The translations under genes were made by a program, and so were the position numbers. The notes beneath the pieces are model-generated. The model had not been told where the DNA came from and did not search any database. It saw only the letters and a list, made by a program, of their open reading frames with translations. Below are positions 57,949 through 64,000 of a DNA stretch of 64,000 nt, in pieces. This DNA is from Vitrella brassicaformis CCMP3155 (taxonomy: Eukaryota > Protista > Chromerida): the NCBI GenBank assembly GCA_001179505.1, contig CDMY01000603.1, positions 62,001 to 126,000 on the forward strand. The letters run 5' to 3'. Numbering within the stretch: position 1 is the stretch's first letter; every line of letters starts with the position of its first letter.

Positions 57949-58322
57949 GGCCAGCTGCTGTCCTCCCGAGACTATGGGGGACACGTGAGACTGAGACGCC
58001 GGTGGGCGCCCCCAAAGCGCATGCATGCAGCTCCTCGGTCGCCCGCATGTTTCGATCACACGGCCGTTGCGTCATTCTTTGTTCCCACCCACTGGTCCGC
58101 TCCTAGCTGCCCGTTCCCCTCAGTCATTTGGTCATGACATTCATATCAGCCATCCGCACCAAATGAATGGCACATCGCATCGCATCGCATAGATGCGGAC
58201 CCCCACAAAGCCACGCGTCCACGCGCACAGCCACGCACCACGTGTGTTCCCCAAAAAGACCTACAAAAATCGCTGCAAGCCAAATCAATCGCCGACCATC
58301 AATCTCATCTATCTCATCTCAG

Positions 58323-61300
58323 TCAGATGGGTCTGAAGGCAAACATATCCATCTTGACGTTGAGGAATCCGCGGGGATTGAGCCTGATCATCTTGTAGGC
58401 CGACAGAACACCGTTGGCCCCACCCTCGCCCAGCTGCGTCAGCGGCACGGTCGTCTGGCCGAAGGCGCTGGAGGTGAAGCTGCTCTGCTTGGCCGACGCA
58501 TCCACCACCTACATACACACACACACACACACTCACAACACACATAGATATCCCCAACTGACAGCCAGTCATCCAGTGACCACGCTTACGCGGAAGTGCA
58601 GCTGCTCTGTCTGGGGATTGGCAACGAGGAATGAGAAGCCCTGCGCCCACACGGGAGTGCGGGACATCCTGATGGTCTGGTGTGTGCCGCTGAGGTATGC
58701 GTCGATGTCCTCTGCGTGGACGTCCAACACACTCGCAATCTCCTCGTTGGTCATCCGGCGGTCCTTCAGCAGCTTCAGCTTGCGCAACAGAGTGTCCAGC
58801 ATCACATTGCCTGCATCACAGACACATGTGCAGCCGAGCCATCTATCTATGTGCGTGATTCTGCTCTCCCGCTCTCCCTGTGTCTCCGTGTCTGCGTGTC
58901 TGTCTGTCTGTGTGCTTTGTGCCTACCGGTTTGTCCGTCCTCGGCTTTCGGAGGTATCCACGGCTGTGTTTCGCAGGTCGACCGCTGCTCGCCACCAGGT
59001 CCCACCAAAGACACCAACACCTACAACGCAAGATAACACAACACAACACACCACAACACACCGACCCAGCCATTGATCCATCCGTCCATCCATCCGTCCA
59101 TCCATCCATCCGTCCAAGCTCCCTCCCTCCCTCCCTGTGTAATGACCACCGCACCTTTGGCTGCGAGGATGTCTTAAGCCGCAACTCCTCCGCCCGATCG
59201 ACAGCCACCCACACCAGCCACCCATTGCCATCCCCAGAGCCACCGGCGCTGTCCTCTGCTGCTGACGACTTTGGTGAGGGGAGCTTTGGCAAAGGCACCT
59301 CGCGAGATAGCGAGAACCACTCGGGTCGCAGGTAGACGAACGACGCGCCCCGCTGTTTGTCCTTGTTGGTTGCGTCAATAAGCTTGTGGTGTGGGCTCTC
59401 GAGCGGCAGCCGGATGGTGGCTGCGGCGGCGTGGTCGTCGGTTGTTGAGTGGGTGTAGATGAGGGGGTCGGCGAGGCCGCCGCCCACTGAGAGGTCGAGG
59501 GCGACTTTGATCTCGGTCTCCTTCTTGCCCGTCTTCTCCTTGACCCACATCGGCGGCCGCTCGCCCTCAGCCGGCTTGTACCTGACACACACAACACATG
59601 TGTGTGGGTGGTGTGGTCTGCTCTGCTGACTGCGTTGTGCAGTCATTGTATTGTTTTCCTCTCTCGTGGCTCTCGGTGTGAACGTACCCGATGAAGCACC
59701 ATGGCTGTCGATAGGAAGGTCGGTCGCCCTGACCCTGACACACCACGGCACGCCACGGGCCAAGCCAAGCCAAGCAAGCAAGGGTTATGGGAGAACTTGC
59801 TGCACGCCTTATGCTACGCTATGCTGTCTGTGTGCGTTGGTTGCGTGCAGGCCTACTGGTTTCAGTAGTTTGGATCCGCAGTTGAGCAGCTGGCTCCTGG
59901 CGTCCCACCAGGCCTCCCCGCTGTCCTGGATGGCGCACATGACCACGGTACGGCAGGGCAGGCCGTCGATGAACTCGCGCAGCTGCTTGTCCTGCGAGCC
60001 ACCGGGGGTGTCATACCTACAACCACACAAACACGAGCCAGCCCATTCTCATGTTGGGGTGGGGTGGGGTGGGAGCTGGGGGGGCTGTCGCTCACCAGCA
60101 GTCGAAGGTCTCGGCTTTGGTTACATCGCCGGTGACCCCGTCCATGGCGACCACATGGATGCCGCGGCCGCTCACGTCACGCCGCTCTCCGTTGACGACG
60201 ATGCCGGGCTTGCCCTTCTTCCCGCCAGCCGACCTGCACTCGATGCTGACTTTCTTGGCTTCAGGCGGCGCGTCGTCGCCCCGCATCTCCTCGGGAATGT
60301 CGCCCCGGGCTGCCAGCTTGGCTGTCTGAAGCAGGTCCTTGACTGTGATGCTGACGGACGGATTATCATGACAGACAGGAAAGGGGCTGGGCTGTGGGGT
60401 GCGGGGTGTGGTGTGGCGTGAGGGTGTGTGGGTCTGGCCTGGAGGGGAGGCTAGCTACCTTACCTGACGTGTCCGATGAGTGAGTTCTTGCCGAGGACCT
60501 CCTGGTCGAAGATGCTCACCTTGACCTCCTGCATCTCGCGATCGTGCACGATGAAGTCATCCGTCTGCAAGCACCCACACACACTGGGCATGAAAGCGGG
60601 AGGGTTCTTCAGAACTTTCTGTTGTTCCGCGTGTAATGCATGCGATGTGCTCACCTCGTTCCATCTTGCGTTGTTGTCGTCACTGACCACTGATGTCACC
60701 ATCTCCTGAGCACCCACCTTGACCTCCACAAACGGGTCAGCCTGCCAATCAACCAACCACGCATTGCATGCAATGTGCTGCGAATTCCCTGCCTTCCTGC
60801 TGTCACTGACCTTGTCGTTTTTGAATATGCTGCCGATGCCCCTCCACTCGGACCTCAGCCCCTCCGCCCTCACCACCGTCAACCGCAGGATCCCCACACC
60901 AGGCGGGTTCCGCAGCTGGATCAAATCCACAGCCTCGGACAAGTTCAGAGCGATGCTGTTTGTGACACATCAAGTCACGACACACACATTTGGCTATATG
61001 TCACTCACACACACACACACACACATACACACATACTTACCGGTTTGGGACGACGAGTGCGTTTGCGATTGATGAGGTGATGACATTGTTGACGATGCCG
61101 GCAAGGAAGGGGAAGTCGGCAATGTTGGCCAGACCCGTGAACTCGATCGACACCTGGGGCGGGTTCTGGAAAAATACCTGACAATCCAATCCACCGAGCA
61201 GACAGACAGATCAGCAGCTCGTGTGGTGTGGGTGTGTGTATAGGTGGGTGGAAGGCTGGAGGCCTATGTCGGTTCAATACCTGCATGCCTCCGACAAGCG

Positions 61301-62247
61301 GCGGTGTGGCGATGAGTGGCGTCATGAGCACCACCAGCTGGCCCGACATCGACAGCTGCGACACACCGAACTCACCTGCACACACAGACACACACACACC
61401 CTGGCCTGCATCCACTGGCCGAGCCCGGCAATGCAATGCGTCCGTACCAAGGTAGTTGACGGCGAGGGCAATGTCAGCGTCGCCATGGTAGTCGATGTCC
61501 AGGACCATCCTGATGGCGTCGTGGCCAAGGGCATCCTGCAGGCAGGCAAGCCAACATCACACACATCACTAACACGCACAGCCGATGCGATGCATTCACG
61601 AGTGCAGTGCTGTGCTGTGATGTGTGTGACCTTGAGAGGCGATATGTGCACCCGCTCGATGGTCAAGGGCTGCAGGAACAGACAGACAGACAGACAAGAT
61701 GCTGGCAGCCTTGTCTCTCTGTCGGTGCGTCGCGTCACCTCCCTCACCTTTTTGCCGAGTTTGGTTTTGGTGAAGCGGATCTTCTTGATCGCATTCGGCA
61801 CCGACGCCTGCAGCACAGGCTCGATCTCATCTACAGGACATGACATTACACACACATACGCAACACGCACACACAGAGTCATGACCACGAAGAGATCACC
61901 CATCCATCCATCCATCCACCTTTCATTGTCTGCGCAGCGGCCTGCCCAATGTAGGGCCACAGGTTCACAATCAGCCCGTTCAGCCACTCAGCACCGGTCG
62001 AGCCAGACACCTTCGAGCCCATCGTACGCAGTCCGCCGCGGAATAATGATGGGATGCCGCCGCCATGGCCGCCGTGCCCTCCGATGAGTGGCAGCTGGTC
62101 GGTAGGTAGCTCCCGCGACGATGTGCCTGCATCCTCAGCGGATCTGTTGCGGCGGCCGCACAGCGCTGCGAGAGAGTTGATGAATCGTTTGAGAAAGGGC
62201 AAATTCGTCAGCAGGGCGTACGAGTACATCACGGCGGATCGACGCAC
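58323..62247 (-). CDS. Extended-synaptotagmin-like SMP-C2-C2 protein with an inserted ILEI domain
   Basis: SMP: [18 protein letters not shown]...FTKTKLGKK|PLTI...VVPNR. C2A: [13 protein letters not shown]...[10 protein letters not shown]...WNE...SIFDQE. ILEI insert. C2B: [13 protein letters not shown]...[25 protein letters not shown] at 58323. The start could be 62247 or 62229. Confidence 0.88.
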
Positions 62248-62314
62248 GCACCTCTGTTTCTCTTGCCTCTGTCCTGTGTTTTTTTGTTTCCGTGAAACCG
62301 ATGGAGGTTTGGCT

Positions 62315-62322: not shown

Positions 62323-62420
62323 CTTGCGGAAGAGGAGTGTGCCTGAAGATGAGATGCGCATACGAGCGGATCTGTGACTGAAGGAGCTGACTGCGGCTAC
62401 CTCTCTCAGTGAGGTGACCC

Positions 62421-63649
62421 ATGTGGCCGAATCCCCAGCTCCAGCAGGCGCTTCAGCAGCAGCAGCAGCAGATGGTGGCCGGCGTCAACATGCAGTTCGG
62501 CGGCATGCAGCCCAGCCAGATGATGGCGCTCCAGCAACACACCATGAACCAGATGCAACAACACCAGGTGCCGCTTCAGCAGCAACAGCAGCAGCAGTGG
62601 GGTGGTCCGTTCTCTCCCCCCGCACCGCCCGCTGCTGTCCCAGTAGCACCACCTGCGGACATGGAGCTCAAGAACGTCATCGAGCGAATCGCCGGTGGGT
62701 CAGCCACTCACTCCTGTCATGTGTCTTCAAAGGGACGATGTTTGTCTGTTTGAACAGATTATGTGACCAAGAACGGCCCGCAGTTTGTGGATGTGGTTCG
62801 CGAGAAGCATCCCAACGATCCCAAGTTCGCTTTTCTCAGCGGCGGGGAGGGACACGACTACTTTCGATTTTGCCTCTCTGCCGCCCAGCAACAGCAGCAC
62901 CCCGGCCAAATGACGCAGATGAACATGTTCTTCGGGGGCATGCGGCCACAGGTGAGGTGCGAGGGAGCGAGAGAGAAATAAAGGGGAGGGAGGAGTGGGC
63001 ACAGCACACACACACACACACATCCATCCACCGATGCTCTCATTCATTGTGTTGCTGTGGTGTGTCCGCCCGGCATGGCATGGCTACAGGCGAGCGTCAG
63101 CGGCCCAGCTCCTCTCCCCCCTGTCGCCGCGCCCCCCACTCCCCCAGTGACATCACTGCCCATCCAGATGAACGGCAGTGGCGCTCAGCAGCCACCACCA
63201 CCACCGCCGCCACTAAATGGGCCGCTGGAGGCCGGGGGCGGCGACATGGAATCGCTCCTTATGCAGTTTCAGGGTCGGTCAGTGACAGACAGATCAGCAA
63301 GGGCGGTTGGTTGTCTTATCGCACTGATGGCATCTGTGGTTGTGTTTCAGAGCCTCCGAGGGGACCGCCGCTTCCCCCTGATACGGAGAAAGGGCTCAAC
63401 GGTACGCACGCACAGACGATTGGACGAACCCGTTCGTTTTGTGCAGGACTTTATCCATCTCTCTCTCTCTGTGTGTGTGTTGATGTCAGACGTGTTGTGG
63501 TCTTTGGAGAAGAAGGCGTCGGGTGACAACATCCGCAGCGGCCACCAGTGGATGAAACTCAACGCAAAAAACATCAAGCAGGTCGGTGTCAGGCAGTGGC
63601 ACACACACACACACACACGCGCACACACACAAGAGGACACTGGCACTGC

Positions 63650-63682
<33 letters not shown>

Positions 63683-64000
63683 TGTTCACAGATAGCGTGT
63701 GCGCTTCGCGAGAGGATGGCTGACCTGCGGACATTTGCGCACAAGCTGCACGTGCTGTACCTGGTCCACGACGTCATACAAGTGAGGCTACAGTCAATCA
63801 AGGACAGATAGCTGCAGCAGTGGGGTGCTACCTCACACGCACAACCAACCAAAACGACTTAACGACTGCTGCGGTCTTGGTTGAACGAACTTACCCTCAT
63901 GGATGGATGGATTGATCGCAGAGCGAAGTGGCCGAACAGCCAGCGGTACACTCACCCGAACGACCCACTTACCCCACCCACCGCACCACCTCCCTCCCTC
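62421..64000 (+). CDS. CHERP-like SURP + CID RNA-processing protein, runs off the window end
   Basis: Q-rich start; SURP ELKNVIERIA|DYVTKNGPQFVDVVREKHPNDPKFAFL...YFRF; CID-like ASGDNIRSGHQWM...KLHVLYLVHDVIQ. Confidence 0.8.

Follow-up and report, generated by a model that had tools for sequence, protein, structure and literature searches.

Proteins that combine an SMP domain with C2 domains are the textbook lipid-transfer tethers linking the endoplasmic reticulum (ER) to the plasma membrane: their SMP domains move glycerolipids, the loops of their C2 domains bind acidic membranes, and their targeting is usually attributed to a transmembrane anchor together with the binding of phosphoinositides by C2 domains. 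In extended synaptotagmins (E-Syts), tricalbins and plant SYTs the SMP domain is followed directly by the C2 domains, and the same holds for a protein encoded on the minus strand of the stretch of DNA analysed here, which comprises 64,000 nucleotides of contig CDMY01000603.1 from Vitrella brassicaformis CCMP3155 and is hereafter called the window. Chromerids, to which this alga belongs, are photosynthetic relatives of apicomplexan parasites and have a four-membrane plastid. What sets the Vitrella protein apart is the presence of an ILEI domain, a module known from FAM3A-D, from the stem of POMGnT1 and from the GG domains of CEMIP and TMEM2, whose Pfam profile (PF15711) it matches in order over three exons. 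To our knowledge, the known eukaryotic ILEI members are secreted, Golgi-lumenal or extracellular, and carry the domain either alone or beside glycosyltransferase, G8 and PbH1 modules, whereas the Vitrella ILEI domain forms part of an SMP-C2 protein for which neither a signal nor a transmembrane segment is predicted.

The described proteins that invite comparison are E-Syt2, whose C2A-C2B resembles the Vitrella C2A in sequence, and TbE-Syt of Trypanosoma brucei, which is the closest in size and likewise has two C2 domains (PMC8093936). All known E-Syts are reported to have an N-terminal transmembrane hairpin that serves as ER anchor (PMC8093936), a feature of E-Syt-type tethers that the Vitrella protein lacks. 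The C2 domains differ as well: where C2B of TbE-Syt has a short loop helix, the Vitrella C2A would accommodate an ILEI domain of 155 residues plus some 80 further residues, and, compared with E-Syts, the Vitrella C2B has a helical insert of ~50 residues and some of the C2A calcium ligands have been substituted. Our reading, to which we assign a probability of about 0.55, is that the 824-residue product is an anchorless E-Syt-like protein composed of SMP, C2A, a nested ILEI and C2B, in which the ILEI domain would provide a second, sugar-recognising surface. The combination of SMP, C2 and ILEI was found in no other protein or publication among those searched; the E-Syt-like kind itself is known.

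An expressed gene with SMP, C2 and ILEI exons

Three-frame translation and inspection of exon borders yielded a gene of 16 exons (2475 nucleotides, 824 codons), all 15 introns of which are of the GT..AG type with consistent phases, and whose start codon is the earliest in-frame ATG past a stop at 62316-62314. Every peptide string quoted in an initial annotation of the locus was recovered on the minus strand where that annotation had placed it, and the limits of the ILEI domain coincide with codon limits, 60253 being the first base of the Lys codon that opens KVSIECRS (exon 10, residue 33) and 59491 the last base of the Leu codon that closes IKVALDL (exon 13, residue 30). Searches of the alga's own genome with exons 6 and 13 for paralogues returned the gene itself only, and the SMP-C2-ILEI gene is single-copy in the CCMP3155 genome.

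Whether the ILEI exons are spliced into the SMP-C2 transcript, a check on which the initial annotation had made its proposal depend, could be answered with contigs from public RNA runs placed on window 58300-62300. One spliced contig of 2783 nucleotides from run X7 (record 19) spans 58300-62276 and covers the whole coding sequence, and run X1, which comes from another study, contributed three shorter spliced contigs. Together these reproduce to the base nine of the 15 predicted junctions (with CT..AC ends on the plus strand), among them all four at the ILEI exons (60464/60350, 60096/60016, 59857/59734 and 59688/59581), and they connect exons of the C2, ILEI and 3' parts with 0-1 mismatches. 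No joint skipping the ILEI exons occurs among the joints listed for the contigs of this interval. Since nine contig joints equal predicted introns, the ILEI exons belong to one mRNA together with those for SMP and C2; the gene is real and expressed. A gene-model artefact, in which the ILEI exons would stem from another gene or be absent from the SMP-C2 mRNA, is refuted by these spliced contigs and retains a negligible probability, since the X7 contig and the three X1 contigs join all parts at the predicted GT..AG sites in two studies and nothing was found in favour of such an artefact.

Other RNA data call for a few remarks. Run X6 gave unspliced genomic contigs. Two intervals, 58836-59103 and 61650-61783, collect very deep pile-ups and many false joints from unrelated contigs in all four runs, and these piles, which fall on introns and exon edges with abundant simple repeats, were ignored. 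Run X2, which is labelled as a different organism but belongs to the same study as X1, contains spliced contigs that agree fully with the final two exons of the gene (58300-58809); these would be better explained by carry-over, or by one organism bearing two labels, than by an orthologue.

As for the domains, Pfam profiles were scored on single exons or on stop-free stretches. The ILEI profile, whose cut-off is 27 bits, matches residues 62-84 of exon 10 over profile positions 1-23 (14.5 bits) and residues 1-50 of exon 11 over positions 21-72 (25.4 bits, E-value 2e-5), that is, adjacent exons fall on adjacent segments of the profile, and a simple sum of the two scores, which were obtained apart, amounts to ~40 bits; in a Pfam scan of the whole genome exon 11 scored 25.1 bits. 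A HMMER search with exon 10 against 1.84 billion representative proteins returned two matches, P0001 and P0002 (E-values of 7e-5 and 1.7e-4, identity of 37-42% over ~55 residues), each of which has five ILEI domains with scores of 360-399 bits. A profile made of the ten repeat units of these two proteins aligns residues 29-83 of exon 10 to its positions 4-60 and then, collinearly, residues 8-35 of exon 11 to 67-94 and, weakly, residues 7-15 of exon 12 to 116-124, from which the domain would start near KVSIE and run on into exon 13. The ~150-residue length of the repeat unit in these nearest relatives agrees with that of the Vitrella ILEI domain. Among sequences in the PDB, exon 10 touched the POMGnT1 stem and FAM3A only, and weakly. 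Judged by these profile matches, the similarity to ILEI is far beyond chance, and the proposal that an SMP-C2 protein contains an ILEI domain is thus upheld in V. brassicaformis, a myzozoan, by Pfam, by the P0001 and P0002 matches, by the collinear profile and by splicing.

P0001 is encoded among bacterial-type genes on contig JAICJU010000062 (L004 4001-7600) of assembly GCA_025928295.1. Both relatives have one hydrophobic segment and a weak match to Raptor_N (caspase-like), to which P0001 adds a ChW repeat, and both are without SMP or C2. Their tandem ILEI units are N-terminal, with no evident signal sequence, and lie ahead of the hydrophobic segment; by this arrangement the repeats might be cytoplasmic, which would be unusual for the ILEI family. 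In the Vitrella genome, the lone other ILEI locus detected (L001, contig 419:71197-74427) scores 33.2 bits, above the Pfam cut-off. With a hydrophobic leader and an upstream fibronectin-III-like sequence, both seen by eye, and no SMP or C2 nearby, L001 looks like a conventional secreted ILEI protein. Its identity to the ILEI domain of the SMP gene is 26% over 54 residues, which rules out that the latter is a recent copy of it. Nor does the fusion look like a recent exon insertion, because the domain has its borders within exons 10 and 13 and is split by three introns.

The SMP domain is identified by exon 6, which alone matches SMP_LBD (PF17047) with 29.7 bits (cut-off 27) over positions 129-173 of the 180 in the profile, and it is extended by weak collinear SMP_MUG190-like matches of exon 1 (profile 3-21) and exon 2 (profile 29-53); in a six-frame scan of the whole genome the SMP_LBD profile scored 32.3 bits at this locus. 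No transmembrane segment is predicted, Kyte-Doolittle means over 19 residues staying below 1.6 inside every exon, with a maximum of 1.58 inside the SMP domain and of 1.08 in exon 1. This agrees with the earlier remark that a clear N-terminal transmembrane hairpin is missing, and a missed upstream exon encoding one is unlikely because the ATG is the first after a stop and a divergent neighbour lies ~190 bp off. The name extended synaptotagmin, which the initial annotation had used, fits the succession of an SMP domain and two C2 domains; it is nevertheless too strong for a protein without the hairpin of known E-Syts, and we therefore speak of an E-Syt-like SMP-C2 protein.

C2 domains, domain order and sugar-contact residues

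C2A is recognised in exons 7-9, which share a frame, are separated by stop-free introns and were scored as one stretch (60463-60969). The Pfam C2 profile (PF00168, cut-off 22) gives 33.5 bits from profile position 2 onwards, exons 8 and 9 also match singly (profile positions 23-52 and 56-85, respectively), and the closest solved sequences are plant CAR4 and the C2A-C2B of E-Syt2 (4npk). When the calcium loop is read with the textbook numbering of Syt1, the positions of D232 and D238 are occupied by Glu and Ser, in line with the earlier description of the calcium-binding aspartates as partly degenerate. C2B gave two weak matches, one to the corresponding domain of E-Syt2 4npk and one of exon 15 residues 44-72 to Pfam C2 (profile 40-68, E-value 0.045); exon 15 has no significant match in the PDB. 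The helical insert in this domain, the other unusual insertion that this protein contains, shows a faint Cro/C1-type helix-turn-helix pattern (Pfam HTH_19, E-value 0.019, 15.3 bits against a cut-off of 30.2).

The initial annotation had placed the ILEI domain inside C2A. Candidate C2 pieces do occur in order on both sides of it, with PEWFSL after ILEI; the insertion as such is inferred from the order of motifs. The C2 match ends at profile position 85, at the end of exon 9, just where the ILEI-bearing exon begins, and this exon opens with SITVKDLL, the remaining part of beta-6 for a C2 domain of type II, a type to which E-Syt2 C2A, E-Syt2 C2B and TbE-Syt C2B belong (PMC8093936). Some 230 residues past SITVKDLL comes PEWFSL, the one match to a beta-7-like pattern in the whole gene, for which the chance of occurring in a segment of 88 residues is 1.3-2.0%. 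C2A would thus have contiguous strands 1-6, a candidate beta-7 that comes only after ILEI, and no clear beta-8, and the loop between beta-6 and beta-7 would hold a linker of 25 residues (probably a helix, proposed from composition only, and an acidic, proline-rich spacer), the ILEI domain of ~155 residues and 55 more residues ahead of PEWFSL. In C2B of TbE-Syt a short helix occupies the equivalent loop between beta-6 and beta-7, which faces away from the calcium site (PMC8093936). The order of the C2 pieces, together with this one motif, makes it likely that ILEI is nested in this loop of C2A.

Properties of the ILEI domain itself bear on its possible function. In POMGnT1, Arg129, Asp179 and Arg207 directly bind beta-linked N-acetylglucosamine and are conserved in FAM3 proteins, and in vitro sugar binding has been found for the POMGnT1 stem, FAM3C, FAM3A and the nematode Fam3L2 domain (PMC9802357). 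In the alignments, counterparts of all three residues are present in the Vitrella ILEI domain, the first of them in a GRGIHV motif identical in the POMGnT1 stem. The POMGnT1 numbering equals the chain index + 86, an offset that fits the whole triad, and the bacterial ILEI unit through which two of the residues were placed matches the POMGnT1 stem, FAM3A, FAM3B, FAM3C and TMEM2 with E-values of 1e-10 to 1e-12. Because this triad is retained, a lectin-like role is reasonable and recognition of a sugar or glycolipid is plausible; roles in protein binding or regulation have about the same likelihood.

A possible mechanism and the competing readings

We picture the protein working as follows. The SMP domain would carry glycerolipids while the C2 loops would dock on an acidic membrane; the ILEI domain, held in the beta-6/beta-7 loop at the pole of C2A opposite the calcium- and lipid-binding loops, would constitute a second recognition surface standing in for the absent transmembrane anchor, and this surface might recognise a sugar-bearing ligand, either the head group of a glycolipid or a glycoprotein. 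With no such anchor, a contact with a second membrane or partner would be needed for tethering. Should the ILEI domain bind a lipid or protein that carries sugar, and do so at the cytosolic face, this would represent a novel means of directing a lipid-transfer protein to a membrane, and a rare instance of an ILEI domain that functions in the cytosol, with a possible bearing on how lipids reach the four-membrane plastid of chromerids. A much more specific version, in which the nested cytosolic ILEI domain is a sensor of sugar head groups (for example those of galactolipids in the outermost plastid membrane) and the second attachment point of an anchorless SMP protein, is a long shot, and the choice of plastid galactolipids as its target is pure speculation; if true, it would amount to a membrane contact site guided by a lectin, in an alga whose plastid is of the complex type.

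Several points weigh against our reading: (i) exon 13, including its residues 50-105 taken separately, has no C2 match in Pfam or the PDB, the 14-residue strand after PEWFSL seems to fit beta-1 of C2B better than beta-8 of C2A, C2A may be incomplete for want of its normal last strand, and the nesting itself is read from motif order, (ii) the N-terminus is weakly hydrophobic, (iii) the R/D/R triad is also present in the aligned bacterial repeat unit, and may be a hallmark of the family rather than proof of sugar binding, and (iv) no orthologue was found in the protein library or in JGI metagenomes.

The first of these points would suit a tandem arrangement, in which C2A is a truncated or degenerate C2 domain of six strands, ILEI is an ordinary domain of its own that stands between the two C2 domains, and PEWFSL either arose by chance or belongs to an unrelated linker element. 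Such an arrangement gains from the 55 residues of undetected family between ILEI and PEWFSL, and from the strand that follows PEWFSL, which we assign to C2B because it repeats the RAE-x-L signature of C2A beta-1, leaving C2A without an evident beta-8. However, a C2 sandwich that ends after beta-6 is not expected to fold, the Pfam C2 match stops exactly at the ILEI-bearing exon, and PEWFSL stands at the expected place (p ~0.01-0.02). We regard the tandem arrangement as unlikely, albeit worth keeping in mind, and favour the nested one.

The N-terminus bears on the side of the membrane at which the protein would act. SMP and C2 domains work at cytosolic membrane faces, where we would place the whole protein, including its ILEI domain. 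The opposite orientation would follow from a cryptic N-terminal signal that sends the protein into the secretory or plastid-import route, its ILEI domain then facing a lumen as in most known ILEI proteins, and this would be in keeping with mildly hydrophobic residues 16-25 (mean of 1.63 over 10 residues) and with the hydrophobic leader with which the other ILEI gene of the genome seems, by eye, to open. Yet the stretch is short, Asn and Ser break it up and RRNR comes right after it, and SMP and C2 domains are generally known to act on cytosolic faces. A cryptic signal therefore seems to us very doubtful.

The strongest competitor concerns sugar recognition, and would leave the architecture unchanged: the ILEI domain could be, instead of a lectin, a module for protein-protein contact, dimerisation or autoregulation. 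The functional mechanism of FAM3 proteins has been called unclear (PMC9802357), which leaves room for such a role, as do the triad kept in the bacterial repeat unit and the bacterial ILEI repeats, which might be cytoplasmic. Against it stand the in vitro binding of sugars by the POMGnT1 stem, FAM3C, FAM3A and the nematode Fam3L2 domain (PMC9802357) and the presence of all three POMGnT1 contact residues in the Vitrella domain. A non-lectin role is a serious possibility, although we would not bet on it, and sugar recognition is the role that we retain in our reading.

As regards orthologues, the search with exon 10 against the 1.84 billion representatives returned two multi-ILEI proteins but not even the gene's own product, which makes their absence weak evidence; this library's coverage of proteomes from chromerids and other protists is evidently poor. 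JGI metagenomes scanned with exons 10 and 13 contained no relatives, the ESM Atlas gave no usable match to exon 10, and the PDB gave nothing useful for exon 7 and only chance matches to CP43 for exon 11. No publication in the literature searched links PF15711 or ILEI with SMP or C2 proteins, and the literature found on apicomplexan contact sites does not treat parasite E-Syts beyond the family name. Should the ILEI domain merely be a lineage-specific add-on without orthologues, it would be a curiosity of domain shuffling.

Feature coordinates and the neighbouring gene

Table 1. Features of the SMP-C2-ILEI gene in window coordinates, with the open reading frames of locus L001 in the last row
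Feature	Position	Strand	Remarks
Whole coding region	58323..62229	-	ATG at 62229; TGA stop 58325-58323
Exons 1-4 (high to low)	62229-61920, 61830-61748, 61669-61631, 61535-61448	-	
Exons 5-8 (high to low)	61375-61281, 61177-61041, 60955-60811, 60741-60655	-	
Exons 9-12 (high to low)	60564-60464, 60350-60096, 60016-59857, 59734-59688	-	
Exons 13-16 (high to low)	59581-59155, 59020-58927, 58810-58590, 58508-58323	-	
N-terminal 79 residues	61993..62229	-	weakly hydrophobic start and His/Gly-rich stretch
SMP domain	61041..61992	-	exons 1 to 6
C2A core, strands beta-1 to beta-6, type II	60329..60891	-	ILRLTVV through SITVKDLL; exons 7-9 plus 7 residues at the start of exon 10
Linker between C2A core and ILEI	60254..60328	-	25 residues; sequence reading
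ILEI/FAM3/GG domain	59491..60253	-	~155 residues; exon 10 residues 33-84, exons 11 and 12, exon 13 residues 1-30
Arg in GRGIHV, counterpart of POMGnT1 Arg129	60164..60166	-	exon 10 aligned to stem chain positions 33-64, GRGIHV identical
Asp in AIQDSGE, counterpart of POMGnT1 Asp179	59923..59925	-	transitive: exon 11 to bacterial ILEI profile, bacterial unit to TVKDEG
Arg in SYRQPW, counterpart of POMGnT1 Arg207	59708..59710	-	transitive: exon 12 to profile (weak), unit GYRNSW to GWRDTW
Segment after ILEI	59326..59490	-	55 residues; no Pfam or PDB match; ATIRLPLES stretch resembles a C2 strand
PEWFSL, presumed beta-7 of C2A	59308..59325	-	lone beta-7-like pattern match in gene
Pro/Ser-rich linker before C2B	59224-59307	-	
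C2B	58326..59223	-	exon 13 residue 120 through exons 14-16; strands read from sequence
Helical insert in C2B	58635..58775	-	~50 residues, exon 15, between beta-3 and beta-4, calcium-loop side
Junctions found in contigs	58810/58927, 59581/59688, 59734/59857, 60016/60096, 60350/60464		
Junctions found in contigs (rest)	60564/60655, 60741/60811, 61177/61281, 61535/61631		
Open reading frames of L001	663-1148, 1048-1788, 1834-2814	+	

The divergent neighbour occupies window 62420-64000 on the plus strand and starts at a distance of ~190 bp from the SMP gene's ATG. Its product shows poly-Gln tracts together with a SURP-like motif (KNVIERIA...GPQFV...DPKFAFL) and a segment resembling a CID, and is probably a splicing factor of the SR140/SCAF type; the two genes would have a short bidirectional promoter region in common. 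The introns of the SMP gene are dotted with simple repeats such as (CCAT)n, (GACA)n and (CA)n.

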